The notes under the pieces were generated by a model. That model was not told the origin of the DNA, ran no database searches, and saw only the letters and a list, made by a program, of their open reading frames with translations. The translations under genes and the position numbers were made by a program. A DNA stretch of 62,751 nt, counting the filler, from Basidiobolus meristosporus CBS 931.73 (lineage: Eukaryota > Fungi > Basidiobolomycota): the NCBI GenBank assembly GCA_002104905.1. It is 4 parts of 4 records of this genome, joined end to end, with 100 filler letters (N's around TTAATTAATTAA, not from the genome) between each part and the next. Parts side by side here need not be neighbours in the genome. Positions count along the whole stretch, not along the records: positions 45,581 to 59,184 come from MCFE01001199.1; 3 more parts are not named here. One strand, written 5' to 3'. This document shows, piece after piece, positions 45,682 through 59,184 of this stretch (its first letter is position 1; each line of letters opens with the position of its first letter).

Positions 45682-46726
45682 GACTATTGAGTGATGGATT
45701 TTTGAATGAAGTAGACTCGCCCAGACAACCTCATATTTATACTTCTCCACACAACCGTAAATCCAGTGTAAGAATGGATGAGAAATCAAGCCCAAAAATG
45801 GGATTCTATTCGGACATTACTACACTTGGAACAGTTCGTAATGCAAAGACCAGTGCGGAAGAATAATTCCATCACCATTGCAATTAGATATCAAATCAGC
45901 CCTGTATTTGGTCGATCACATTACTGATCGGCAGAGATTGAGTTTATCATACCTGAATGCCCCATCAGGTTATAATGCATCTATTACTACGGAATATTGG
46001 AGGAGTAGTCAGGTTTTGATAAACAGCTAGGGAATGCCAATACTAAACCGTAGTCTATTGGTCCTTCATTCAGCTTCATCTGATTCGCAGTAGAGAATAA
46101 CGGCGTGCATTATACCGGAATATTTGAACTTATTATACTTCACCATATGATAACGTTTTGGATGTCCTCTGATCTAACGCGGTATCTTGGCCACCATTTT
46201 TTCAACAAAACATAAACTGCTGCTTTCACGCAATCAGCAATGATTGAATTGCCGAGCAACACAGTAAAATTACAATCATACGATGGCTATAGTTTCAATT
46301 TGTGGTCATTCACCAGTTGCTAAATTAGTCATTTAATCTAATAGAAAGAAAATGTGTCAGTTACTGGATTCCTGGGGCGCATATCCTTCCCCTGAAAGGA
46401 TGGGGTGCTTCCGACTTGGATAGCTATGGTGAGGATATCACGAATTTACTAGTGATAAATGTGGATTAATGAACAGGTCAGGCCAGTAAAAGTGGTGACT
46501 ACAGGCAGTGCGGAGTGAACGGCAACGATGCCATTGAATATCTCTTAACCAGCTCCGTGAGCGTGCATTATCACAGAGATGGGCTGGTATCACTATCTAA
46601 TGCTTTAAACTTGAGAAAACCATCACTTGATTGTGTATGTGTGAATTTTATTATTACGTTGGCTTGGCTAATGATTGGATTTATATTACATGATGGCGAT
46701 GTGTGGAATGCAAGTGAAGGATGGCT

Positions 46727-48409
46727 CTAAAGCAACATTCCAGCAATAGTGGCACTCATCAGTGTGGACATCGTGCCACACAACATCGCTGAGAAGGCGA
46801 GCTCGGCCAGATCCTTCTTGCGACTAGGTGCCATAGCCCCCAAGGCACCAATCTGGATACCGATGGATCCGAAATTGGCGAATCCGCACAGGCAGTAAAT
46901 GCCCAGTGATGCTGTTCTCTGCTCCAAGGCCCCCGAAGTGGTGAGGTTGGCAAGCTCGGCGAACGCGGCGAACTCGTTCACAAACATCTTGGTGGCCATC
47001 AGGCGAGCGACAGTGAGGAGATCTCTGTTTGGGATGCCAACCAGCCACATGAAAGGATAGAACAGGTAGCCAACGATGAACTCCAGGGTGAGGTTGTCGA
47101 TGTTGAAGAAGTTCCCGACCCAGGTGAGGAACGAGTTGACCAGCGCAAGCAATGAGATGAACGAGATGACAGTGGCTAGAATCAGCAAAGCCAAGTGGAT
47201 ACCCTGGGCAGCTCCGTTGGAGGCAGCATGGAGGAAATTGGCCTCCTTGTCTTCACTCTCGGGGATTCTCACCTTGCCCTTGGTGACTGGCTCACCAGTC
47301 TCCGGGTAGCGCATTTTGGAGATGGCAAGACCGCAAGGAACCGACATCACACACGAGGTGATCAAGGTCTGTGCATCGACCTTCATTGAGATGAAGGCAA
47401 CCAGCACAGAGCCGGAGATGGTGGCAAAGCCAGAGGTCATGGCTGAGTGAAGCTCACTGCGAGTGAGGGTTTCCAAGAATGGCAGGATCAGTAAGGATGA
47501 TTCGCCCATGCCAACGAATGGCGAGGCAGCAGCGACCACCGACTCGGCTCCACTGGTGCCCATAAGTCTGACCATCAACCAGGCGAACTTTCGGACGATC
47601 CATTGCATACCACCGAGATAGTACACTACCTTGACAATGGCCGCGAAGAAGATCACAGCTGGCAACACGGTGAACACAAAGATGCCGATGTTGGCGATGT
47701 CGTCGTTGGTTACGAACGACAGGCCTGACTTGGAGAAGTGAAGCAGAGTGGAGCACATGTTCGAGAGCCAGCTGAAGATGTCATAGCCGACAGAGGTCTT
47801 GAGGATGAACAAGCCGAGAAGGAACTGGAGCAAAACACCCACGACGACAGTTCTCCAGGGGATGAGCTTGCGGTTGTTCGACGTGGCAAACAGAACGCCA
47901 ATGAATATCACCAGCCCCAGGAGAGATCTCAACCGATCCATACGGGTACTGTGACCCTCTTGGATGGGAAGCGCCAAGGTGACTGAAACGATCAAGCCGA
48001 CAGGAAGCAGAACACCCAGGACAAGACGGATCTTCTCGGGGATGGCAAAGACGACCTTGAAGATGGCACCAAAGAACATGCCTAACGGCTTGGAAAGAAT
48101 CCTGGTGGTAACGTGGTAGAACATAAGCTTTAAGGAGACAAAGGCCCACAGAAGGGACAGGACCAGGGAATCCTTTCCGTGCAATATCCAGGCACCGATC
48201 ATCAATCCGGTGATGACCAGAAACATCAATAGATGGAACCATAAGCGAAAGCGACGGTAGAATGACTGTGGCTGATCCTCCGTTGAGGTGTCGATCTCCT
48301 TCTTCTCCTCAGGGTAGGTGTCGTTGGCACTTACTGGAAGAAAGGAGGGAGGGTGTGATTCGGAGCTCCTTCGCACTTCTGGTGCTTCACAAGAGTTATT
48401 CGAGTTCAT
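46727..48409 (-). CDS. Concentrative nucleoside transporter (CNT/SLC28 family), 560 aa, intronless
   Basis: IPWRTVVVGVLLQF, FTVLPAVIFF, PFVGMGES, MTSGFATISGS, TKMFVNEF and CGFANFGSIGIQIG motifs. Confidence 0.95.
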   Translation of the reverse strand: MNSNNSCEAPEVRRSSESHPPSFLPVSANDTYPEEKKEIDTSTEDQPQSFYRRFRLWFHLLMFLVITGLMIGAWILHGKDSLVLSLLWAFVSLKLMFYHVTTRILSKPLGMFFGAIFKVVFAIPEKIRLVLGVLLPVGLIVSVTLALPIQEGHSTRMDRLRSLLGLVIFIGVLFATSNNRKLIPWRTVVVGVLLQFLLGLFILKTSVGYDIFSWLSNMCSTLLHFSKSGLSFVTNDDIANIGIFVFTVLPAVIFFAAIVKVVYYLGGMQWIVRKFAWLMVRLMGTSGAESVVAAASPFVGMGESSLLILPFLETLTRSELHSAMTSGFATISGSVLVAFISMKVDAQTLITSCVMSVPCGLAISKMRYPETGEPVTKGKVRIPESEDKEANFLHAASNGAAQGIHLALLILATVISFISLLALVNSFLTWVGNFFNIDNLTLEFIVGYLFYPFMWLVGIPNRDLLTVARLMATKMFVNEFAAFAELANLTTSGALEQRTASLGIYCLCGFANFGSIGIQIGALGAMAPSRKKDLAELAFSAMLCGTMSTLMSATIAGMLL

Positions 48410-49574
48410 AATGAGAAATTAGATGCTGTTAGTGATAATGATGATGGCATACCGAGATCGTTCGGTATATATATTCAACCTCATTCCAACACCATTGCTT
48501 ATGTCAAGTGAATCTCGCCTTATATGGCAGTCATTAAAAGTATTTAGCATTCAATACAAATCCGGTGGACGCTTATTTCATCGAAGCGTTCGATGGTCGA
48601 ACAGGATCAGGGAAGGCGTTCCGATTTAGGCATTAGAAGCGTGTTCGATCATTAGGTATTAAGATTAATCGATCACTTGGCCAAAAATAGTATTATTCAA
48701 TGCACTGTATCAAACTCGGAGTATGAATATGGTAAAGTGGTATGAAACTTGGATAAAGCTTGAAGCCATAATCTTATTCATAAATTGAGGCCGATTCTTT
48801 GGAACACCCGCCATCCAGCCAGTTTGTATCGAATACGATGGTAAGATCTTCAATAGTTGATATTACTTCCCTAAAGCTGCCCTACAACGGAATCAAAAAT
48901 TACCGAAGATATTCTTCATTTCCATCTTCACGTGGTGAGTATTGCCTTCAGTAAGGAAAGAACATCAAGAGGCAAGCATCCAGAATTCGAGATTGTATGA
49001 GATTCAGAAACCTCCCATCCAATAAGGGAACATTAGAGAGACTCACATTCCAGGCGTGGGAAAGGCAATCTCTTGGGCTCCGGATCTTTTTGCCTATATT
49101 TTCGACCATGCATATTAATCATAAATATGGTACCCCAAGATGATCGCTGTTCATCTGCCTATTTATGGAGATGTTGTTCACCTTGTTTCTATACTGGGTT
49201 AGTAAGGACATGTTGCAAGAAAAAAACTTGCCGTCTTTGCAAGATCAGCTTCTCTTGGCTGTGGGCTATAAACCGTGCAGGGCTTGATGCTTACATATAG
49301 AGATTTGGTGTTTCGTGCAGAAGTATATTCAGGAGAATATATTCGCACTACTATTTCCAACAAATTCAGCCATGATATCTAAAAGCTTTTCACTTTTCTG
49401 AATATGGAAATAATAGAACGAATACTTCGGTCAGTAGGGTGGTTAGCAAAGAATGCATGAGGGGGAGCTGAAAGGAAGGCCGCTGAGCTTATTTTTATTG
49501 CCAAACTGGTGTTCGTGAGAAATGAACCTTACGCTTATTTATTAGAGAATGTACACAATGTTTATACAATGCTT

Positions 49575-50387
49575 TCAGATGCTTTGGGCTAGGAATAATC
49601 CCAGGGCAGCTACGACTCCACCAACTAAAGCACTGTTGAGGTTGAATCGGGGAGCAGGTACTGGTTGTGCGTGCAGCCCAAACGAGGCCGGCACATCCGA
49701 GCCATCCTTGGTGTAGTATTTAGCAAAGAAGTCGTTCTGAAGCCAAAGAACCTTGTTGAAGGCCAGATTCACTTGCAGCTCGTGCTCCCGCTCAAGTTGA
49801 AGTGAGCCAACCAGCGACATCAGGGTATTCTCGATGAAGCCCATGAGCGCAGAGATATGGATGTACTCCACGTTGATCTTGGACTTCTTTCCCGGGATGT
49901 CGGTATGGATCTTGGCCACCCAGTCAAGGTACTTGATCATCCTCTCGTCGTAGGGATTGGCCAGGAGACGGTTGATGTAGCGGGTCAGCATATCTTTTCT
50001 GTACTTGATCTGGGAGCTGTCGACCTTGAGATCCTGCACTTTCTCAACCACCTCCCCAGCGTACCCCTCGTGGCGTTTGGCCATGGATTCCCAAGTGATG
50101 TCGAATGCTCTGAGCTTGTCATACACAGTGTCCACTATGACACCACCAAGAGGGGCCAGTCTCTTCGACACCGATTTGATGGCCTGGACATCTTTGTCGG
50201 AGAAATCCACAAACTTGGCCACATAGTTGTAGCGATACACCGGATCTGTATGAAGGAGCACCCTGTCTACATGGTCCATCTTGACGTCTTTGGAAGCCGC
50301 TGCTTTCGTTGGGTTACCGGAGACGTTGTCGCGGGTAGTCTGGTCATGACCAAGGGAGTTTTTGTGGGTTCTTTCGACGGTAAACAT
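49575..50387 (-). CDS. Protoglobin-domain (sensor single-domain globin-like) protein with hydrophobic C-terminus; alternative start 50279
   Basis: VDR..LHTD...RYNY...FVDFS..D....K...LAP....IVD.VY.KL..FDIT, KIH, INVEYIHISALMGF and AFNKVLWLQNDFFAKYY match fungal protoglobin-family proteins (from recall, no search). Confidence 0.82.
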   Translation of the reverse strand: MFTVERTHKNSLGHDQTTRDNVSGNPTKAAASKDVKMDHVDRVLLHTDPVYRYNYVAKFVDFSDKDVQAIKSVSKRLAPLGGVIVDTVYDKLRAFDITWESMAKRHEGYAGEVVEKVQDLKVDSSQIKYRKDMLTRYINRLLANPYDERMIKYLDWVAKIHTDIPGKKSKINVEYIHISALMGFIENTLMSLVGSLQLEREHELQVNLAFNKVLWLQNDFFAKYYTKDGSDVPASFGLHAQPVPAPRFNLNSALVGGVVAALGLFLAQSI

Positions 50388-51590
50388 GGCTATTGAGTAA
50401 TGGATTTACGAATGAAGTAGACTTGCCCATACACCCTCATATTTATACTTCTCCACACAACTGTAAATCCAGTGTATGAACTGATGAGAAATCGAGCCCT
50501 AAAATGGGAATTGCACCAAACCCTATGAAGACATCGCTCTGTTTGGAAGAGCTCTTGGAGCAGAGGCCAGTGGAGAAGTATATTCCATCACAAATCTTCC
50601 CCGTATTTGGTTGAAGACTTATCTGATTGACAATATATGAGATATCGATATCAAATCTCAACCGCATTTGGTAGATATCTGGTTTTATCTGATCCACAGT
50701 GCTGAACAACTGAGTGTATTATTCACTCGACCATCTGATTACCTTGCTGATACTCTTAATTTGCCATCGTTTACTTGATGACTATATGTATATGTATTCA
50801 ATGGATCCAGGCTTGGTAATAACCCTGTTCAGGTGATGCTTTCAAGTGAGGTAAAGAGATAGTCGCTCATCGACAATTATATGAGCAATTTCATGGAATC
50901 GAAGGAATACTTCATATTCCGATTACCAGAGTCTCCCAATGGGTACAAATCGAGAATCTCAGCCATTATACTGACTATCTGTTTCTGCAATTGTTATCGT
51001 TACGGTGTGACACTGTTGCGAATCTTGTTCACCGCTCTCACATTATGATTAGGGAGCGATGGTGTTTCAAATACGGTTATAATACGAATTACCCTCGTGA
51101 GATGGTAGGGGTATATTCGATATTAAAATCGTAGGATGAACGCTCTCTATGCAGGCAACTATTAGGAACTCGGCAGTGGTAAATGAGTTCAAATTTTGTT
51201 ATCGGCTTCCGTATTAAACTTGAAAATGTTAGTGATCACGAATTCGATTACCTCAAATCCTTCCCCTGAAAGGATGGTGTGCTTCCGACTTGGATAGCTA
51301 TGGTGAGGATATCATGAATTTAGTAGTGGTAAATAATAATAACAAGCCAGTAAAAGCGGTGACTACGGGCAGTGCGGAGTGAACGGCTACGATGCCATTG
51401 AATATCTCTTAACCAGCTCCATGAGCGCGTATTACCACAGGGATGGGCTGGTATCACTATTTAATGCTTTAAACTTGAGAAAAACATCACTTGATTGTGT
51501 ATGTGTGAATTTTATTATTACGTTGGCTTGGCTAATGATTGGATTTATATTACATGATGGCGATGTGTGGAATGCAAGTGATGGATGGCT

Positions 51591-53274
51591 CTAAAGCAAC
51601 ATTCCAGCAATAGTGGCACTCATCAGTGTGGACATCGTGCCACACAACATCGCTGAGAAGGCGAGCTCGGCCAGATCCTTCTTGCGACTAGGTGCCATAG
51701 CCCCCAAGGCACCAATCTGGATACCGATGGATCCGAAATTGGCGAATCCGCACAGGCAGTAAATGCCCAGTGATGCTGTTCTCTGCTCCAAGGCCCCCGA
51801 GGTGGTGAGGTTGGCGAGCTCGGCGAACGCGGCGAACTCGTTCACAAACATCTTGGTGGCCATCAGGCGAGCGACAGTGAGGAGATCTCTGTTTGGGATG
51901 CCAACCAGCCACATGAAAGGATAGAACAGGTAGCCAACGATGAACTCCAGGGTGAGGTTGTCGATGTTGAAGAAGTTTCCGACCCAGGTGAGGAACGAGT
52001 TGACCAGCGCAAGCAATGAGATGAACGAGATGACAGTGGCTAGAATCAGCAAAGCCAAGTGGATACCCTGGGCAGCTCCGTTGGAGGCAGCATGGAGGAA
52101 ATTGGCCTCCTTGTCTTCACTCTCGGGGATTCTCACCTTGCCCTTGGTGACTGGCTCACCAGTCTCCGGGTAGCGCATTTTGGAGATGGCAAGACCGCAA
52201 GGAACCGACATCACACACGAGGTGATCAAGGTCTGTGCATCGACCTTCATTGAGATGAAGGCAACCAGCACAGAGCCGGAGATGGTGGCAAAGCCAGAGG
52301 TCATGGCCGAGTGAAGCTCACTGCGAGTAAGGGTTTCCAAGAATGGCAGGATCAGTAAGGATGATTCGCCCATGCCAACGAATGGCGAGGCAGCAGCGAC
52401 CACAGACTCAGCTCCACTGGTGCCCATGAGTCTGACCATCAACCAGGCGAACTTTCGGACGATCCATTGCATACCACCGAGATAGTACACTACCTTGACA
52501 ATGGCCGCGAAGAAGATCACAGCTGGCAACACGGTGAACACAAAGATGCCGATGTTGGCGATGTCGTCGTTGGTTACGAACGACAGGCCTGATTTGGAGA
52601 AATGAAGCAGAGTGGAGCACATGTTCGAGAGCCAGCTGAAGATGTCATAGCCGACAGAGGTCTTGAGGATGAACAAGCCGAGAAGGAACTGGAGCAAAAC
52701 ACCCACGACGACAGTTCTCCAGGGGATGAGCTTGCGGTTGTTCGACGTGGCAAACAGAACGCCAATGAATATCACCAGCCCCAGGAGAGATCTCAACCGA
52801 TCCATACGGGTACTGTGACCCTCTTGGATGGGAAGCGCCAAGGTGACTGAAACGATCAAGCCGACAGGAAGCAGAACGCCCAGGACAAGACGGATCTTCT
52901 CGGGGATGGCAAAGACGACCTTGAAGATGGCACCAAAGAACATGCCCAACGGCTTGGAAAGAATCCTGGTGGTAACGTGGTAGAACATAAGCTTTAAGGA
53001 GACAAAGGCCCACAGAAGGGACAGGACCAGGGAATCCTTTCCGTGCAATATCCAGGCACCGATCATCAATCCGGTGATGACCAGAAACATCAATAGATGG
53101 AACCATAAGCGAAAGCGACGGTAGAATGATTGTGGCTGATCCTCCGTTGAGGTGTCGATCTCCTTCTTCTCCTCAGGGTAGGTGTCGTTGGCACTTACTG
53201 GAAGAAAGGAGGGAGGGTGTGATTCGGAGCTCCTTCGCACTTCTGGTGCCTCACAAGAGTTGATTTGAGTTCAT
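51591..53274 (-). pseudogene. CNT copy 2 with a +1 frameshift after codon 4 (pseudogene, re-initiating allele or sequencing error)
   Basis: ATG AAC TCA AAT CAA CTC TTG TGA versus ATG AAC TCG AAT AAC TCT TGT GAA in copy 1. Span is 1684 vs 1683 bp. The rest of the protein is identical. Confidence 0.8.
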
Positions 53275-54493
53275 GATGAGATAGTTATTGTTAATGAGGA
53301 ATACTAATGAAATCATTCGATATTTATATTTGCTTACACAACCCTGCTCATGTCAAGGTAAATCTTGCCTCTTTTGGAAATCGCTTAGAATACATAGTAT
53401 TCGATCAAACCTAGTGATTACTTATTTCTTAAAAGTACGATCGATGATTATGATTAATCGAATATCGAACCTAATATAGTCTTATTGCAAGTGTAAATTA
53501 AGCAAGGAGGATTCATGGGATAAAGTGGTATAGAACTTGGATAGAGCTTAAAGCCATATTCTCTTTCAGGAAATACCACCTATTCTTTGGATCGTTGCTA
53601 CTTCGGAAGGACCGCTACCTAGTCAGCTCGGTTCAATTGTCGTATTGTGGTCTTTAATAGTCAATATTACATCCCGAAGCTGCCCAATATCTAGATCGAA
53701 AGAGCACATAAGCTAGACATCATTGTTTTCCATTGTTATTAGAACCTCCACATGGTGAACAGTACCTTCAGTATGGAAAGAATGTCAAGAGGGAAATACC
53801 TAGAATCCAAATGTAAATACGAGATAGAAACCTCGAATCAGAAATGGAGATATTGTAGGGGAGAGTATTCCTGGAGTGGGAGCACCATTTGGAAGCCAAC
53901 ATGGCCATGTCCTCGGAGGTTTGTAGCAACATTTGTGGATAGGGATGTTTACCAGGAAAATAATGCCCTAAGTTAACTGCTGATCATATGTCTATATAAG
54001 GTGGTTGCTTTGGGTTTTTGCGCACCGACATTTACATATTTAGCCCCTTGCTACAGAGTTTAAAGAATCGAAATATACATTAGAAACAAAGTCCAATCAT
54101 CACTAAATTCATTTTCAGCGAGGTGTACTTTCACAAAAAACGGTTTTGGAACCATTATGTGCAAAATATTGACTCATACTACGCGAAGAGTGCACACAGG
54201 ATTGGCACATCTCACGCGTAGTCAGTTATTTCATTGCCATAAGCAATGGCGGCTGATCAATGTATAAACGCTTATCAAATCAATCCAAAAATAATATTAT
54301 GGGATGTTGACGCAGACTAGATGAGAATATTTACAAATGTATATTCTTTGGTAAATGGCTATAAAAGCAACTCCGATTTATTTTGATCAACTCATCTACG
54401 CTGATAGTCAAAATACAACCAACAATAGATGGAGATTATTGATAGTAGCGGACATTAGTAGATACAATTACCGTTGAGCCACTAGTAGATGTG

Positions 54494-54674
54494 GACAAAG
54501 CAAACTCAATGATATAAAGACAGAAATACTTCTTCCAAGGTAGACGTCGACAAAGCAAACTCAATGATATAAAGACAGAAATACTTCTTCCAAGGTAGAC
54601 GTCGACAAAGCAAACTCAATGATATAAAGACAGAAATACTTCTTCCAAGGTAGACGTCGACAAAGCAAACTCAA
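54494..54674. repeat. Perfect 55-bp tandem repeat x3 plus 16-bp partial, overlapping the ABCA stop codon
   Basis: Unit gacaaagcaaactcaatgatataaagacagaaatacttcttccaaggtagacgtc at 54494, 54549 and 54604. Confidence 0.97.
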
Positions 54675-57332
54675 CAACACCATAGTTCTCATTCTTACAT
54701 AACCCCTCCAATGCTTCAAAGAAATCGGGATAGGCCTCTTGATTATCGGGGAGTAAATAAGTAATATTATGGGCCGAGTTCTCCAGTACTTCCGCTGTTG
54801 CAATGAAGGACTGAATAAACTGCGTAAGCCCGTCCTGATCAAACAGTCCATTTTTTATTAGACTGAGACGGTACCCCGTACCAAATCGATCCTTCAAGAA
54901 GAGAGGGCTTCCAAGGGCTTTAAGCTTGCCTTTTGACATGATAGCTACCCGATCACCTAGTATATCTGCCTCCTCCATACTGTGTGTTGTTAGTATGATA
55001 ACTTTGTTTTCTTTGCTATCCTGGATTAGCTGCCAGATGGTGTTTCTCGAGTAAACATCCATACCAGAGGTTGGTTCATCCAGAACAACAATGGAAGGGT
55101 TTCCCAAAAGCGCAATGGCTAGACTGAGTTTCCGCTTCATCCCAACACTGTAAGACCCAGCTTTTTCGATGCATTTTGACGCCAGCGAGACATCTTCCAT
55201 CAATGCAAAGATATACTCCTTTTGTAGAGCATCCGGATCACCTGAGACTACAGTCCCATCTGCCTCGATCTTGCCAAGAACGCGGAGCCCACGCACAGCA
55301 GCAAACAGCTCTAAATGCTCAACCGCTGAGAAAACATCAAGTAGTACATCGGATTGTCGGCAGACTCCAAGAAGCTTTTGAACCTCAAACGTGATGCCGA
55401 TGTTAGGGCTTTGGTTTTTACGTGTAGGCAACGTTTGGCCAAAAATTGAGATGGATCCATCATCGGGGAGCATCAGGCATGATAGCATAGATATGACAGT
55501 TGTTTTCCCGGCACCGTTGGAGCCCAAAAGCGCCAGTACCTGACCCCGATTCAGATCAATGTCCAGGCTATCGACAGCATGGATTTTCTGTCCGCTTCCT
55601 ACAGCATAGGTCTTCTGTAGGTCCGAGATCAAGATGGCCCCACGATCCTGTGGAGCAATGGAACTAACATCCTGTGATTCGAACATGTGCCTGTCCTCTT
55701 CCCTAACCTTTCTAGTAGCCCATAACTCACTACCATTAACGGCGCTGACGGTATCACTAAACCTCACACGTTTCCAGTAGCTGGGGTTAAACAAGAAATT
55801 CCAAGGCAGCCCAATCCCTTCCTTACCAGGTTTCAGGTGATCCGCATACCAGGCCACGAATAAGTACAAGAAGGGATCCACCACAAGCATCAGCATGGCG
55901 ACATACAATGGAGTCCCATGCATGGGATGGTTCATCTCATTAGTGGTATCATATCTGATCAACGCAACTACCTGACCAATAGCGATCGGCGGAAACAGTA
56001 ATGCCAATCTCGAGATAGCCCATGATAGTCTCCGAACTCCAAGAAGCTCGAACCATACAGATACTACAGCAGAAGCAAAGACGAAAACAGTGGCAGCTAT
56101 GGGACCGGTGTGCGTTTCATTGAAGATCAGGGATAAAATGGCCGACAGCGCAATCATCGAGAGTGCATAGAAGCATAGCGCGAATAATACCTGCCAGGCC
56201 ATAACTGAGCTTAGCACTGCCCTGAAATGAAGAAGAGCAACTATTGTGGCAATAGGGAGCAGCGTGAAGATGACCAAACTCGACCAGACTGCAGCAAGAT
56301 AAACGGAGTGATCAAGCCCCATCATAAGCATGGTCCCTTTGATTAAGGACTTCTTGTCCTCGTTCAATATGCTGATGTAGTGGACGAGTAACATCTGGAA
56401 TGCGCCTATTACGTAGAATATAGTCAGCGTAGATATCACAAATCTGTTCATTCTGTTGGACTCCAAGGCAGTATAGGAAATGAACCATTGCCCGATTCCG
56501 CTGGTTGCTTTCTTATCGAAGACCGTTCCTTTTGCTGGGAGTGGGGAAGAAAGCAATGCCTGACCAGCTGCTTGTCGACGGACGTTGGTGATTGCCCGCT
56601 CGATGTATGCTTGAATAGTCAGTGACTTGGACGTAAATAAGCTCGCAATATTGTGCATTGAATAGGCTAAATGTATCTCATACGATGCAGGCTGTCAAGG
56701 GAATTGTTAGTATATATATATATATAGTGCATGAGACTAGCGTCTTTCGCTTGGATACCCTACCTGGCTCGTGTCACAATCATTCAAGGTCATTCCCACC
56801 ACCAGAGAGGATGGATCTTGATTTCTATGGCTCACCAACTCATCAAAGCTGGAAAATTGCCGAGTGGTGACGATACTCGGCTCAGAATACTCCAAAAATC
56901 GTTGAAGATGCCGTAGCGTTTCTTGGTTGGCCCCATTACTGACGTAGCCTATATGAACACAGCTATGATGGCTCGCAGAGCAAGCACTCTCCGTTAGCGG
57001 TGATAGTGGCTTAACATCGAGAACTTGGGAAAGATAAGAGATTATCTGACTGCATCATGGAAGGGAAATCAGAGGGAATATAACCTGCCGGGGTAAATAC
57101 GTATAAAAGAAAGAACAGTCCTATGGCCATATTCATCGGCTGATGGCAAATATTCAGTAAGATGGTGAGCAAAGCCATTGAATCTTCCTACCATTATGAA
57201 GAAATTGTACAAAGAGACTTTGTCTCGAGTGTTCCGAAGCACCTGCATCCTGAGCACCGCTTTGAACTGCTTCCATTTGGAAGGCTCACTGACTGTTTTG
57301 TAACTTGCTATTGAGCTTCTTTTTCGCTCCAT
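54616..57332 (-). CDS. Half-size ABCA-family transporter (TMD-NBD-regulatory domain), about 845 aa. Proposed exons 57332-57192, 57139-57101, 57045-56764, 56691-54616
   Basis: GT-AG introns of 52, 55 and 72 nt keep the frame open (intron 3 has a TACTAAC branch point). N-terminal KWKQFKAVLRMQVLRNTRD, Walker A GSNGAGKTT, YSVGMKRKLSLAIAL, LDEPTSGMD, LTTHSMEEAD, GSPLFLKDRFGTGY and STLEEVFL motifs. Confidence 0.88.
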
Positions 57333-57604
57333 GATATCGCAAAGGATTGAAGTCAAGGAATATATAGCCAGATGAAAACCCTGAGAGTAGTCATGGGTTT
57401 GTACAATTTCAATTGGTCCTACTACAGACCTTCTCATTAGAAATAAGTGCTGTCACATCACAACTACAATCATGTGCACTATTTCTATATGTGGCTCTGT
57501 GGCTTAGCTCGTCCTACTGTTACTCCACATCCTAACGCTAATCAGAGGGCTCATTGGAATCATACAAATACTTATACTCCAGACCAAGTTTCCGATCAAT
57601 CAAC
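57333..57604. promoter_or_regulatory. Putative bidirectional promoter between two ABCA genes
   Basis: 272 bp between divergent ATGs. No specific motif identified. Confidence 0.5.
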
Positions 57605-59184
57605 ATGACGATGTCAACCCCAAGTCCCATTCCGTTTGGCACCCAAGTGAAGATCAATCTTTTACTTAATCTGAGGCTTATCGTTCGTAGAATCTTGAGT
57701 GAGATTTCAGGTACATTTAATACGGACTACAACTAGGAATGCGGCACTAATTGCTCCCATGAAGTCCTTGCCACACCCGTCATATATATTGCTATTGCAT
57801 TTATGATAGTAAGATCTGTTGGTGCTAGTCAGTGGTAAGCCGTCAACATTAACGTTTTAAGGCTAATGCAGGTCAAAGCCTACCGGTCGAGTCTGTTTCA
57901 TGGTAAATGCTCACCCAGCACACCACAGTGAGCCATACTAATCGAAATAAACAGGCCGATCATCTCTCCGCACAGCAACACTCCCTTTTCCTCCAGATTC
58001 AACCCTGGAATCGTACTAAATCCAGGAATCACCGACGAATTCTGGAACCAACAGTTGCTCCCAAACTATATCGCGGTACAAGATAACAGGACTCGAAACC
58101 CCACCTTAAAATTCAACCACTACAGCTCCATTAGTGAAATCATACAACTCGACGACCAACTCAATGCTTACAATGGCCAAGAAGTGTCGGAGTTGGGCTT
58201 CGAGTTGAACCAGATCAAAGAAGGGCGAAACCAGCTCGACTTCGGCTACACTGTGTTCTACCGAAGCTATCAAGCTATATTCCTCCCTTGGCTTGTTTCA
58301 AATATGGAGGCAGCAATCCAGAGTACTTACAGCAAAAATCAACGGACGGCTACAATGAGTAATGTCACTTACAGAACTTTGCCAACCGCTACTTCAGAAA
58401 AGCTGGTCGATGAAATGGGGACGATCTCTGCATTTATAGTTTACGGTATTGTTCCAAGAGCATATCAGTATTGTTGTTAGCAACTGAACCCATTCTAGCC
58501 TTGGCTACCCTCTTGATCACATACGTAACGAATGTGGTACGTGAGCGCGAGCAAGGTCAAAAGCAACTACTACTCTTGGGTGGTCTGGACGCCCGGGCCT
58601 ATTTTGCCGCCGCTTTCATTAAAGACTTCATGGCCTATCTTGTAGTGATAATAGTGTTGTTGCTCTTCACACGAGTTGAATCGATATCGGCATTTTTGGA
58701 ATCCAGCGCTGTAAGCTATTCGCTACTTCTGGTATTGTCTGGGCCGCCGCTCATCTTGATGGGATACGCACTTTCATACAGGTTTGAAAAAAGTAAATCC
58801 GTTGGGGTATCCATGAGTCTTTTGATTTTCTGGATTATATGCTTTCCATATGTCCTGAGCGACCATCCAAGCCTATTCACCATCTGTAGCTTGACTTTTA
58901 TCTTCCCCACCATTGCGCTGAAGTATGGCTTGAGTGTACGTATCCATAGCGCCAATCTTGTCAGTGTCTGGCAGTATTCAAAGTCTCTGACGTTGTAGGA
59001 GCTGCAAATTGCCTGGACCAGGGGCCATCCGTACTCGATACCCATGGTTTTCGACATCCGCTATCCCCTTCTTCCCATACTATTAACGTTGATCGCCAGC
59101 ACAGCATTTTACGCCTTCTTGCTGGTATGTTTGGAGCAGGCAGGGAACCAACGGCTCTCTTTGATGAAGTTCATATACAAATCC
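57605..59184 (+). CDS. Second ABCA-family gene, multi-exon, TMD portion only (cut by gap; 5' exon structure approximate)
   Basis: MTMSTPSPIPFGTQVKINLLLNLRLIVRR N-terminus and VVREREQGQKQLLLLGGLDARAYFAAAFIKD ABCA TMD motif. Introns at 58446-58480 and 58936-58998 join the ORF pieces. The TMD ends FYAFLLVCLEQ. Confidence 0.8.

Follow-up and report, generated by a model that had tools for sequence, protein, structure and literature searches.

A divergent pair of half-size ABCA genes in Basidiobolus meristosporus, conserved across fungi, as a candidate split ABCA transporter

Two half-size ABCA genes in divergent orientation

Here we examined a divergent pair of half-size ABCA transporter genes in the fungus Basidiobolus meristosporus CBS 931.73. 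The DNA analysed, hereafter the window, spans 62,751 nucleotides (filler included) and joins four parts of four records of assembly GCA_002104905.1. The pair lies on one of these, MCFE01001199.1, a record of 13,604 bp that runs in the opposite direction to the window. We refer to gene 1 and its relatives as A-type, and to gene 2 and its relatives as B-type. The start codons of the two genes (57332 and 57605) are 272 bp apart, as the original prediction had it, and the region between them must contain both 5' untranslated regions and any shared promoter. The coordinates of the features are collected in Table 1.

Gene 1 is built around a minus-strand open reading frame (ORF) of 680 aa (54616-56658), which extends upstream to the ATG and ends with the stop codon at 54616. 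Its three introns have GT-AG boundaries and lengths of 52, 61 and 72 nt, the third with a perfect TACTAAC branch site. A (TA)8 microsatellite sits in this same intron, at 56711-56726, beside the branch site. From its start the product comprises a first transmembrane segment (TM1), an extracellular loop of about 170 aa, the transmembrane domain (TMD), the nucleotide-binding domain (NBD) and an R domain, followed by the stop. It is collinear with the Basidiobolus paralogues P0001 and P0002 (877-885 aa) from the SKWKQF motif near the N-terminus to the TLEEVF motif near the C-terminus, and it ends no more than 4-6 residues from the end point of these paralogues. The description of gene 1 as a TMD-NBD-R protein that then stops is thus borne out by the full model. 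The motif IKGTMLMMGL, quoted earlier as resembling the N-terminal half of full-size ABCAs, was located at 56343-56314, and GSPLFLKDRFGTGY at 54912-54871.

The gene 1 NBD retains the Walker A Lys, the Walker B Asp-Glu and the H-loop His. It deviates from the aligned A-types in that the signature reads SVG instead of SGG, Ser replaces the His ahead of the Walker A Lys, and the Q-loop region has R/S. All other A-types in the alignment read LGHNGAGK and SGG[MQ]KRKLS, and the SVG signature is confined to the window gene 1 among the aligned family members.

On MCFE01001199.1 gene 2 breaks off just past the TMD, at the scaffold end. It has a conserved N-terminal segment in common with the B. meristosporus and B. 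ranarum paralogues, and about 190 aa separate the N-terminal hydrophobic segment from the remaining TMD; both this loop and that of gene 1 were read from the sequence and the paralogue alignment. The motif VVREREQGQKQLLLLGG lies in exon 4, and the introns have GT-AG boundaries. The missing part was found through P0349, a 368-aa B. meristosporus protein recovered with a Haplosporangium B-type exon as the query and located in MCFE01000325.1 of the same assembly. The first seven residues of P0349, MKFIYKS, are the last seven of the window gene 2. On MCFE01000325.1 the gene runs on for the remaining 361 aa, through the NBD and R domain to a stop, for a total of 791 aa, and the next gene downstream is convergent. 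Since this scaffold supplies the NBD, the R domain and the stop, gene 2 is a half-size ABCA, TMD-NBD-R and nothing further. A full-size gene 2 was considered and rejected, as the gene has its own ATG, its own stop and 791 codons. Nor do the two genes make up a single full-size chain: gene 1 stops at 54616, and gene 2, with an ATG and a stop of its own, is read from the opposite strand. Each is a complete half-size gene.

MCFE01000325.1 (our L009; 94.7 kb) is 99.74-99.80% identical to window 53053-59184, of which L009 1-6021 is the counterpart. Because of this identity, the whole 13.6-kb scaffold appears to be a haplotig or a very recent duplicate of part of MCFE01000325.1. Between L009 1432-6021 and window 54595-59184 the identity is 99.74%, with 12 substitutions. 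Gene 1 differs between the two copies at four non-synonymous and two synonymous positions and gene 2 at three positions, all synonymous; both frames are open in both copies. A 55-bp repeat covers the last 17 codons and the stop of gene 1 and runs into the 3' flank. L009 carries only about 1.45 copies, roughly two fewer than the window, which is about 110 nt longer there.

Table 1 Coordinates of the gene pair and associated features in the window.
Feature	Position	Strand	Basis or remark
Gene 1, A-type (N-half-like) half-size ABCA, 843 aa, 4 exons	54616..57332	-	hand-built model
Gene 1 exons	57332-57192, 57139-57085, 57023-56764, 56691-54616	-	checked against paralogue P0002
Gene 1 NBD motif block	55057..55524	-	sequence coordinates
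Gene 1 Walker A, GSNGAGKTT	55524-55498	-	
Gene 1 Q-loop, GVCRQSD	55368-55348	-	
Gene 1 signature, YSVGMKRKLS	55152-55123	-	first Gly of SGG replaced by V
Gene 1 Walker B, VVLDEPTSGMD	55089-55057	-	
Gene 1 H-loop	54993-54964	-	just outside the motif block
Region between the divergent start codons, 272 bp	57333..57604	.	40% GC; gene models
Gene 2, B-type (C-half-like) half-size ABCA, first 430 aa	57605..59184	+	gene model
Gene 2 exons	57605-57710, 57765-57834, 57955-58445, 58499-58935, 58999-59184	+	last exon cut by scaffold end
55-bp direct tandem repeat, ~3.45 copies	54485..54674	.	repeat search

Resemblance to the N- and C-halves of full-size ABCAs

Both genes were assigned to the ABCA family by domain content and by structure-database searches. 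Pfam ABC2_membrane_3 is followed by ABC_tran in the gene 1 ORF, in gene 2 (the TMD in exon 4, the NBD in P0349) and in the paralogues P0002 and P0328. The ABC2_membrane_3 match in the partial gene 1 ORF scored 27.6 bits, below the 31.6 cut-off, and that in gene 2 exon 4 scored 40.5 bits. Relatives also have weak precomputed Pfam matches to ACT_13 and R1_ABCA1. In phmmer searches of the PDB, the closest solved relatives of both genes are ABCA3, ABCA4, ABCA1 and ABCA7 (E 1e-92 to 1e-125), aligned over TMD, NBD and R domain; the next family, ABCB, follows at 1e-30 and is matched in the NBD alone.

The same searches separate the two genes. The best stretch for gene 1 is the N-half of ABCA3, ABCA4, ABCA1 and ABCA7 (E 1e-92 to 1e-111), corresponding to residues 303-859 of ABCA3 and 638-1135 of ABCA1. 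In an exhaustive HMMER search with gene 1 the best matches were likewise full-size ABCAs, aligned in their N-halves. P0349, the NBD-R part of gene 2, is matched best by the C-half of ABCA4, ABCA3, ABCA1 and ABCA7 (E 1e-97 to 1e-115; ABCA4 1922-2252), and P0328, the B. ranarum orthologue of gene 2, aligns with ABCA1 1645-2234 and ABCA3 1117-1717. The gene 2 TMD exon alone also falls on the C-half, as a weak match (E 0.02). The alignments extend to the end of R1 for the A-type and of R2 for the B-type. The N-half-like and C-half-like characters proposed from motifs for gene 1 and gene 2 therefore both agree with the solved ABCAs.

Sequence motifs tell the A- and B-types apart cleanly. A-types carry LGHNGAGK, SGG[MQ]KRKLS and TTLEEVF, as do the N-halves of full-size ABCAs, and B-types carry LGPNGAGK, SGGNKRRLS and TLxQVFVxF, as do the C-halves. 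In both types an R domain follows the NBD and closes on a TTLEEVF or QTTLxQVF motif. Compared with full-size ABCA1, ABCA3, ABCA4 and ABCA7 (PDB 5XJY, 7W01, 7LKP, 8EDW), gene 1 aligns with TMD1-NBD1-R1, and gene 2 and its orthologues with TMD2-NBD2-R2. On sequence grounds, we assign the A-type and B-type genes as the counterparts of these two halves.

We next placed the halves in trees. The alignment covered about 600 columns of the TMD-NBD-R core and brought together half-size proteins from fungi and other eukaryotes with the halves of full-size ABCAs, entered separately. The canonical full-size proteins came from plants, animals, fungi and CRuMs. Among the full-size members with names are Quercus ABCA1, Hydra ABCA3, molluscan and crustacean ABCA5, two Spizellomyces proteins, Rigifila and Thecamonas. 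On the placement of A and B, two quick trees agree with a careful one (LG+C20+F+G4 with posterior mean site frequencies, PMSF). In the careful tree, with support given as ultrafast bootstrap (UFBoot)/SH-aLRT, the fungal A clade (100/99) is sister to 13 N-halves (99/96), with a joint clade at 100/98, and the fungal B clade (100/100) is sister to 13 C-halves (100/99), with a joint clade at 97/84. The split between the N-side and the C-side is supported at 99/96. Gene 1 and gene 2 thus belong to different clades, each with its own half of the full-size proteins. Constraining A and B to form one clade cost 105.9 log-likelihood units and was rejected by the approximately unbiased (AU) test (p = 0.00013). 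This rules out A and B as recent duplicates and upholds the earlier remark that the two TMDs are not recent duplicates.

Within Basidiobolus, the window copy is the first-branching member in both the A and the B tree. The terminal branches of the window copy, the second B. meristosporus copy (Bmer2) and the B. ranarum copy (Bran1) are 0.42, 0.27 and 0.15 in the A tree and 0.49, 0.29 and 0.12 in the B tree. Since branching order is the same and terminal branches are alike in the two trees, the phylogeny indicates that the pair was duplicated within the genus, and has evolved, as a unit.

The trees hold further half-size families. The half-size ABCAs of plants (ATH), dictyostelids and other protists branch deeper, on either side, as does a third family from chytrids. 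The third chytrid family (about 640-990 aa; P0013, P0015, P0354, P0355, P0380, P0382, P0387) groups with half-size proteins of Mastigamoeba, Stygiella and Anaeramoeba basally on the C-side; the half-size proteins of Pharyngomonas, dictyostelids and plants (ATH) are basal on the N-side. Eukaryotic half-size ABCAs may generally divide into N-side and C-side kinds. P0346, an 801-aa half-size ABCA from a EukProt transcriptome, branches at the base of the fungal B clade plus C-halves (100/99) and could represent a B-like half gene from beyond the fungi sampled. Two other full-size proteins, P0254 (Thecamonas trahens, 1768 aa) and P0155, have halves that fall with the deeper-branching half-size proteins and not in the canonical N and C clades, suggesting either that the full-size form arose separately in that lineage or that long branches affect the placement.

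Conserved pairing across fungi and gene models at the loci

An A-type gene and a B-type gene, one of each and divergent, were found at all nine other loci examined (eight species), and at seven of them they are directly head-to-head. Unlinked genes in relatives, which would have spoken against the original prediction, were thus not seen at these loci. Look-ups starting from an A-type or a B-type protein alike led to a partner of the opposite type on the opposite strand, pointing away, and the type of the partner was checked by motifs and scores at each locus. The head-to-head loci are the second B. meristosporus locus (L002; about 870 bp between ATGs after the first exon of the B gene was located), B. 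ranarum (L003; about 717 bp), Chytriomyces hyalinus (L005; about 100 bp), Chytriomyces sp. MP71 (L008; the deposited B-gene model is a fragment), Syncephalis fuscata (L007; about 1.1 kb between deposited gene models), Batrachochytrium dendrobatidis (L010; 356 bp) and Jimgerdemannia flammicorona (L011; 499 bp). In B. ranarum, the A gene K7432_006044 and the B gene K7432_006045 have consecutive locus tags on one 19-kb contig. In Haplosporangium and Mortierella (L004 and L006), about 7.3 kb and four genes lie in between. Pairing and divergent orientation are thus conserved from chytrids to Zoopagomycota and Mucoromycota. An assembly artefact was rejected, the same arrangement being present in ten loci from nine assemblies.

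Among the 120 best matches, B-type orthologues come from Mortierellomycota, Zoopagomycota (Entomophthoro-, Zoopago- and Kickxellomycotina), Endogonales and many chytrids, and no Dikarya sequence is listed. A word-based protein search with residues 1-520 of P0002 gave matches in Basidiobolus and Haplosporangium plus one further sequence. For partner genes, restricted intron enumeration recovered the deposited 749-aa and 564-aa models. The others were stitched together with tblastn as a guide, a procedure that overlooks the small TM1 exon and is not free of errors; the rebuilt C. hyalinus B model (Chya_B), for example, probably has one retained intron and one skipped exon.

The deposited annotation of MCFE01001199.1 contains three genes only: a protoglobin, a concentrative nucleoside transporter (CNT) and a chimeric 864-aa model in which an ABC NBD is joined to a CNT. 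The membrane domain of gene 1 and all of gene 2 on this scaffold are unannotated. The chimera, K493DRAFT_364895 (window 51591-55686, minus strand), joins the gene 1 NBD to the downstream CNT, and a 947-aa model on MCFE01000325.1 (L009 1-2772, minus strand) makes the same fusion. Both models remove the final residues and stop codon of gene 1 by splicing. Because the paralogues of gene 1 end without any CNT, the fusion is probably an annotation chimera or read-through. A deposited 1,438-aa model in J. flammicorona (L011 1402-7481, minus strand) merges the A-type ABCA with a Say1/alpha-beta-hydrolase domain and looks like another gene-model fusion at an A/B locus. The CNT gene itself is tandemly duplicated in the window, at 46380-48416 and 51254-53281 (560-aa and 549-aa ORFs). 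The two copies are 97.8% identical across 2,038 bp with almost identical proteins, and the protoglobin gene (49575-50387, minus strand) lies between them.

A candidate two-chain ABCA and its origin

In full-size ABCAs the N- and C-halves form a pseudo-heterodimer, as seen in the solved structures of ABCA1, ABCA3, ABCA4 and ABCA7. Because an N-type and a C-type gene have been kept together since the divergence of the chytrids, the simplest reading is that the A and B products form one two-chain assembly. We consider it likely that the locus is one copy of an ancient, co-inherited divergent pair encoding the two halves of a heterodimeric, split ABCA (type V) transporter. The original prediction had offered this as a candidate, and structure matches, motifs, trees and synteny all point the same way. 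The two genes would be co-expressed from the shared 272-bp upstream region, and their products would assemble 1:1, reproducing the pseudo-heterodimeric architecture of ABCA1 and ABCA3. The TMD, NBD, R domain and short extracellular loop of each product would then pair with their counterparts as within one full-size chain, and the complex would use ATP to transport lipid or sterol-like substrates, as characterised ABCAs do. For the window copy, the altered A signature would give a heterodimer with one consensus and one deviant ATP site.

Several observations weigh against this reading. Both NBD types have consensus motifs across the family, and thus no family-wide degenerate site favours an obligate heterodimer. 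In phmmer searches of the PDB, the extracellular loops of the A and B proteins gave no alignment to extracellular domains ECD1 or ECD2 of the solved ABCAs. No k-mer is common to the window intergenic region and those of paralogous or orthologous pairs, and no conserved motif was found among them. A shared promoter is not universal, as in the Mortierellaceae about 7 kb and four intervening genes separate A from B. The GenBank models at the locus match neither gene as modelled here. Finally, the several changes at otherwise invariant NBD positions in gene 1, together with the four of six differences that are non-synonymous, could reflect relaxed constraint; the deviant motifs are equally compatible with relaxed constraint on a redundant paralogue.

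The strongest competing explanation is that the locus encodes two independent half-size homodimers, adjacent only through shared regulation or inertia, much as plant ATH half-size ABCAs are assumed to act as homodimers. The Walker A, Walker B, signature and H-loop consensus in both NBDs accords with it, as neither subunit obviously needs the other, and so does the separation of A and B by four unrelated genes in the Mortierellaceae. However, two such genes would have to be present as one A and one B at ten of ten loci although their lineages split early in fungal evolution, and A and B were duplicated together with matched branch lengths. Each type is also the closest half-size relative of one half of proteins whose halves pair, and in the window an A-A dimer would carry two deviant ATP sites, both with the SVG signature. 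We therefore regard independent homodimers as unlikely.

It is less probable still that the pair is real in the family and that the window copy is a decaying redundant paralogue, with gene 1 or both genes non-working here. The window copy has the longest Basidiobolus terminal branches in both trees (0.42 and 0.49), and gene 1 combines the NBD deviations with four non-synonymous differences out of six between the scaffold copies and a variable 55-bp repeat over its stop codon. Against decay, the frames are open over 843 and 791 codons at about 57-59% identity to the nearest paralogues, a divergence at which stops would be expected in an unconstrained frame. The GT-AG boundaries and the catalytic Lys, Asp-Glu and His residues named above are kept, and the gene 2 differences between the scaffold copies are all synonymous. 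Equal acceleration of both partners also fits co-evolution better than the decay of one gene.

The alternative originally raised, a recent local inversion in this genome that turned round the first half of a full-size ABCA gene and had the 55-bp repeat as its breakpoint mark, would produce the head-to-head geometry and could draw on the repeat at the 3' end of gene 1, but is scarcely credible: the same geometry occurs at nine other loci in several fungal phyla, from chytrids to Mucoromycota, the repeat is direct and tandem rather than inverted and differs in copy number between 99.7% identical scaffolds, gene 1 ends as its paralogues do, and gene 2 has its own conserved N-terminal segment, as in the Basidiobolus paralogues. 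The repeat itself is real. It is a copy-number-variable tandem repeat at the 3' end of gene 1 and no inversion breakpoint.

The proposed two-chain ABCA has parallels in known systems. ABCG5 and ABCG8, the vertebrate sterol exporter, are half-transporter genes arranged head-to-head across a short intergenic region, and their products form an obligate heterodimer. The window pair is similarly head-to-head, with 272 bp between the ATGs, and comprises two anciently diverged half-transporters co-inherited across species. Unlike the fungal pair, ABCG5 and ABCG8 belong to subfamily G, have the NBD-TMD order and contain one degenerate ATP site; in the fungal A/B family both sites keep the consensus, and the heterodimer is a prediction. 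With full-size ABCAs the fungal halves share the N-type and C-type NBD and C-terminal motifs, and each type is sister to the respective halves; they differ in being separate polypeptides from opposite strands with short loops (about 170-190 aa). Plant ATH (ABCA2-12-like) and dictyostelid half-size ABCAs (P0014, P0368, P0356) have the TMD-NBD order and a similar length. However, they branch outside the clade of fungal A and N-halves and are not the closest relatives of the full-size halves, and we know of no N/C pairing among them. To our knowledge, no heterodimeric half-transporter is known in the ABCA subfamily. We found no description of paired, split or heterodimeric ABCA half transporters in the literature searched, an absence that is no proof of novelty.

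Half-size fungal genes of this kind have been noted before. Passages in Kovalchuk and Driessen 2010 (PMC2848647) record half-size "Group II" ABC-A proteins only in Spizellomyces punctatus (two) and B. dendrobatidis, the latter including the consecutively numbered BDEG_05951 and BDEG_05952, and conclude that half-size ABC-A proteins were ancestral in fungi and lost in Dikarya. The B. dendrobatidis A/B pair found here probably corresponds to such "Group II" genes. Those passages of PMC2848647 do not mention pairing, divergent orientation, N/C identity or presence in Zoopagomycota or Mucoromycota.

The trees also bear on how the pair arose. According to the heterofusion model, two half transporters that had already diverged were fused to give full-size ABCAs (Xiong et al. 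2015, PMC4649718). A gene pair like the fungal one is not described there, and the fungal A and B genes are living examples of precisely the two kinds of half gene proposed. For both halves, the best trees put the pair as sister to every canonical full-size ABCA sampled, a position that would fit a pre-fusion relic as the model predicts. Both fungal clades sit on long stems, however, and long-branch attraction would give exactly this basal position. We also compared alternative placements with AU tests, using -fast searches under LG+F+G4, a simpler model than that of the careful tree. Placing A with either Spizellomyces full-size N-half was not rejected (p 0.20 and 0.41). Placing B with the second Spizellomyces C-half was not rejected (p 0.23), and placing it with the first was (p 0.033). 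For SPPG_04879, then, neither the A nor the B placement is rejected (p 0.41 and 0.23). Because most placements with the Spizellomyces halves are not rejected, an ancient fission in the fungal stem is a possible origin of the pair. Tentatively, the pair could be a survivor from before the fusion that gave rise to full-size ABCAs, an obligate heterodimer rather than a later fission product, but we hold this to be doubtful.

ABCA proteins include the products of the human disease genes ABCA1, ABCA3, ABCA4 and ABCA7, and research on them has dealt with single chains longer than 1,600 residues. The genes and trees described here establish the genomic and phylogenetic parts of a two-gene ABCA, from which its biochemistry is predicted. 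Half-size ABC-A genes, whose reported range in 2010 was limited to chytrids, now extend to Zoopagomycota, Endogonales and Mortierellomycota, and at the loci examined they always occur in N-type/C-type pairs. The public annotation of the window locus needs correction with respect to the 5' half of gene 2, the gene 1 TMD and the NBD-CNT fusion. If the pair does encode a natural two-gene ABCA, its halves could be separately expressed, mutated and assembled, which would allow tests of recognition between TMD1 and TMD2, between the extracellular domains and between R1 and R2. The pair also bears on whether full-size ABCAs originated by fusion of two diverged halves or otherwise, and if it is a pre-fusion relic, it would represent a living intermediate for the heterofusion model.

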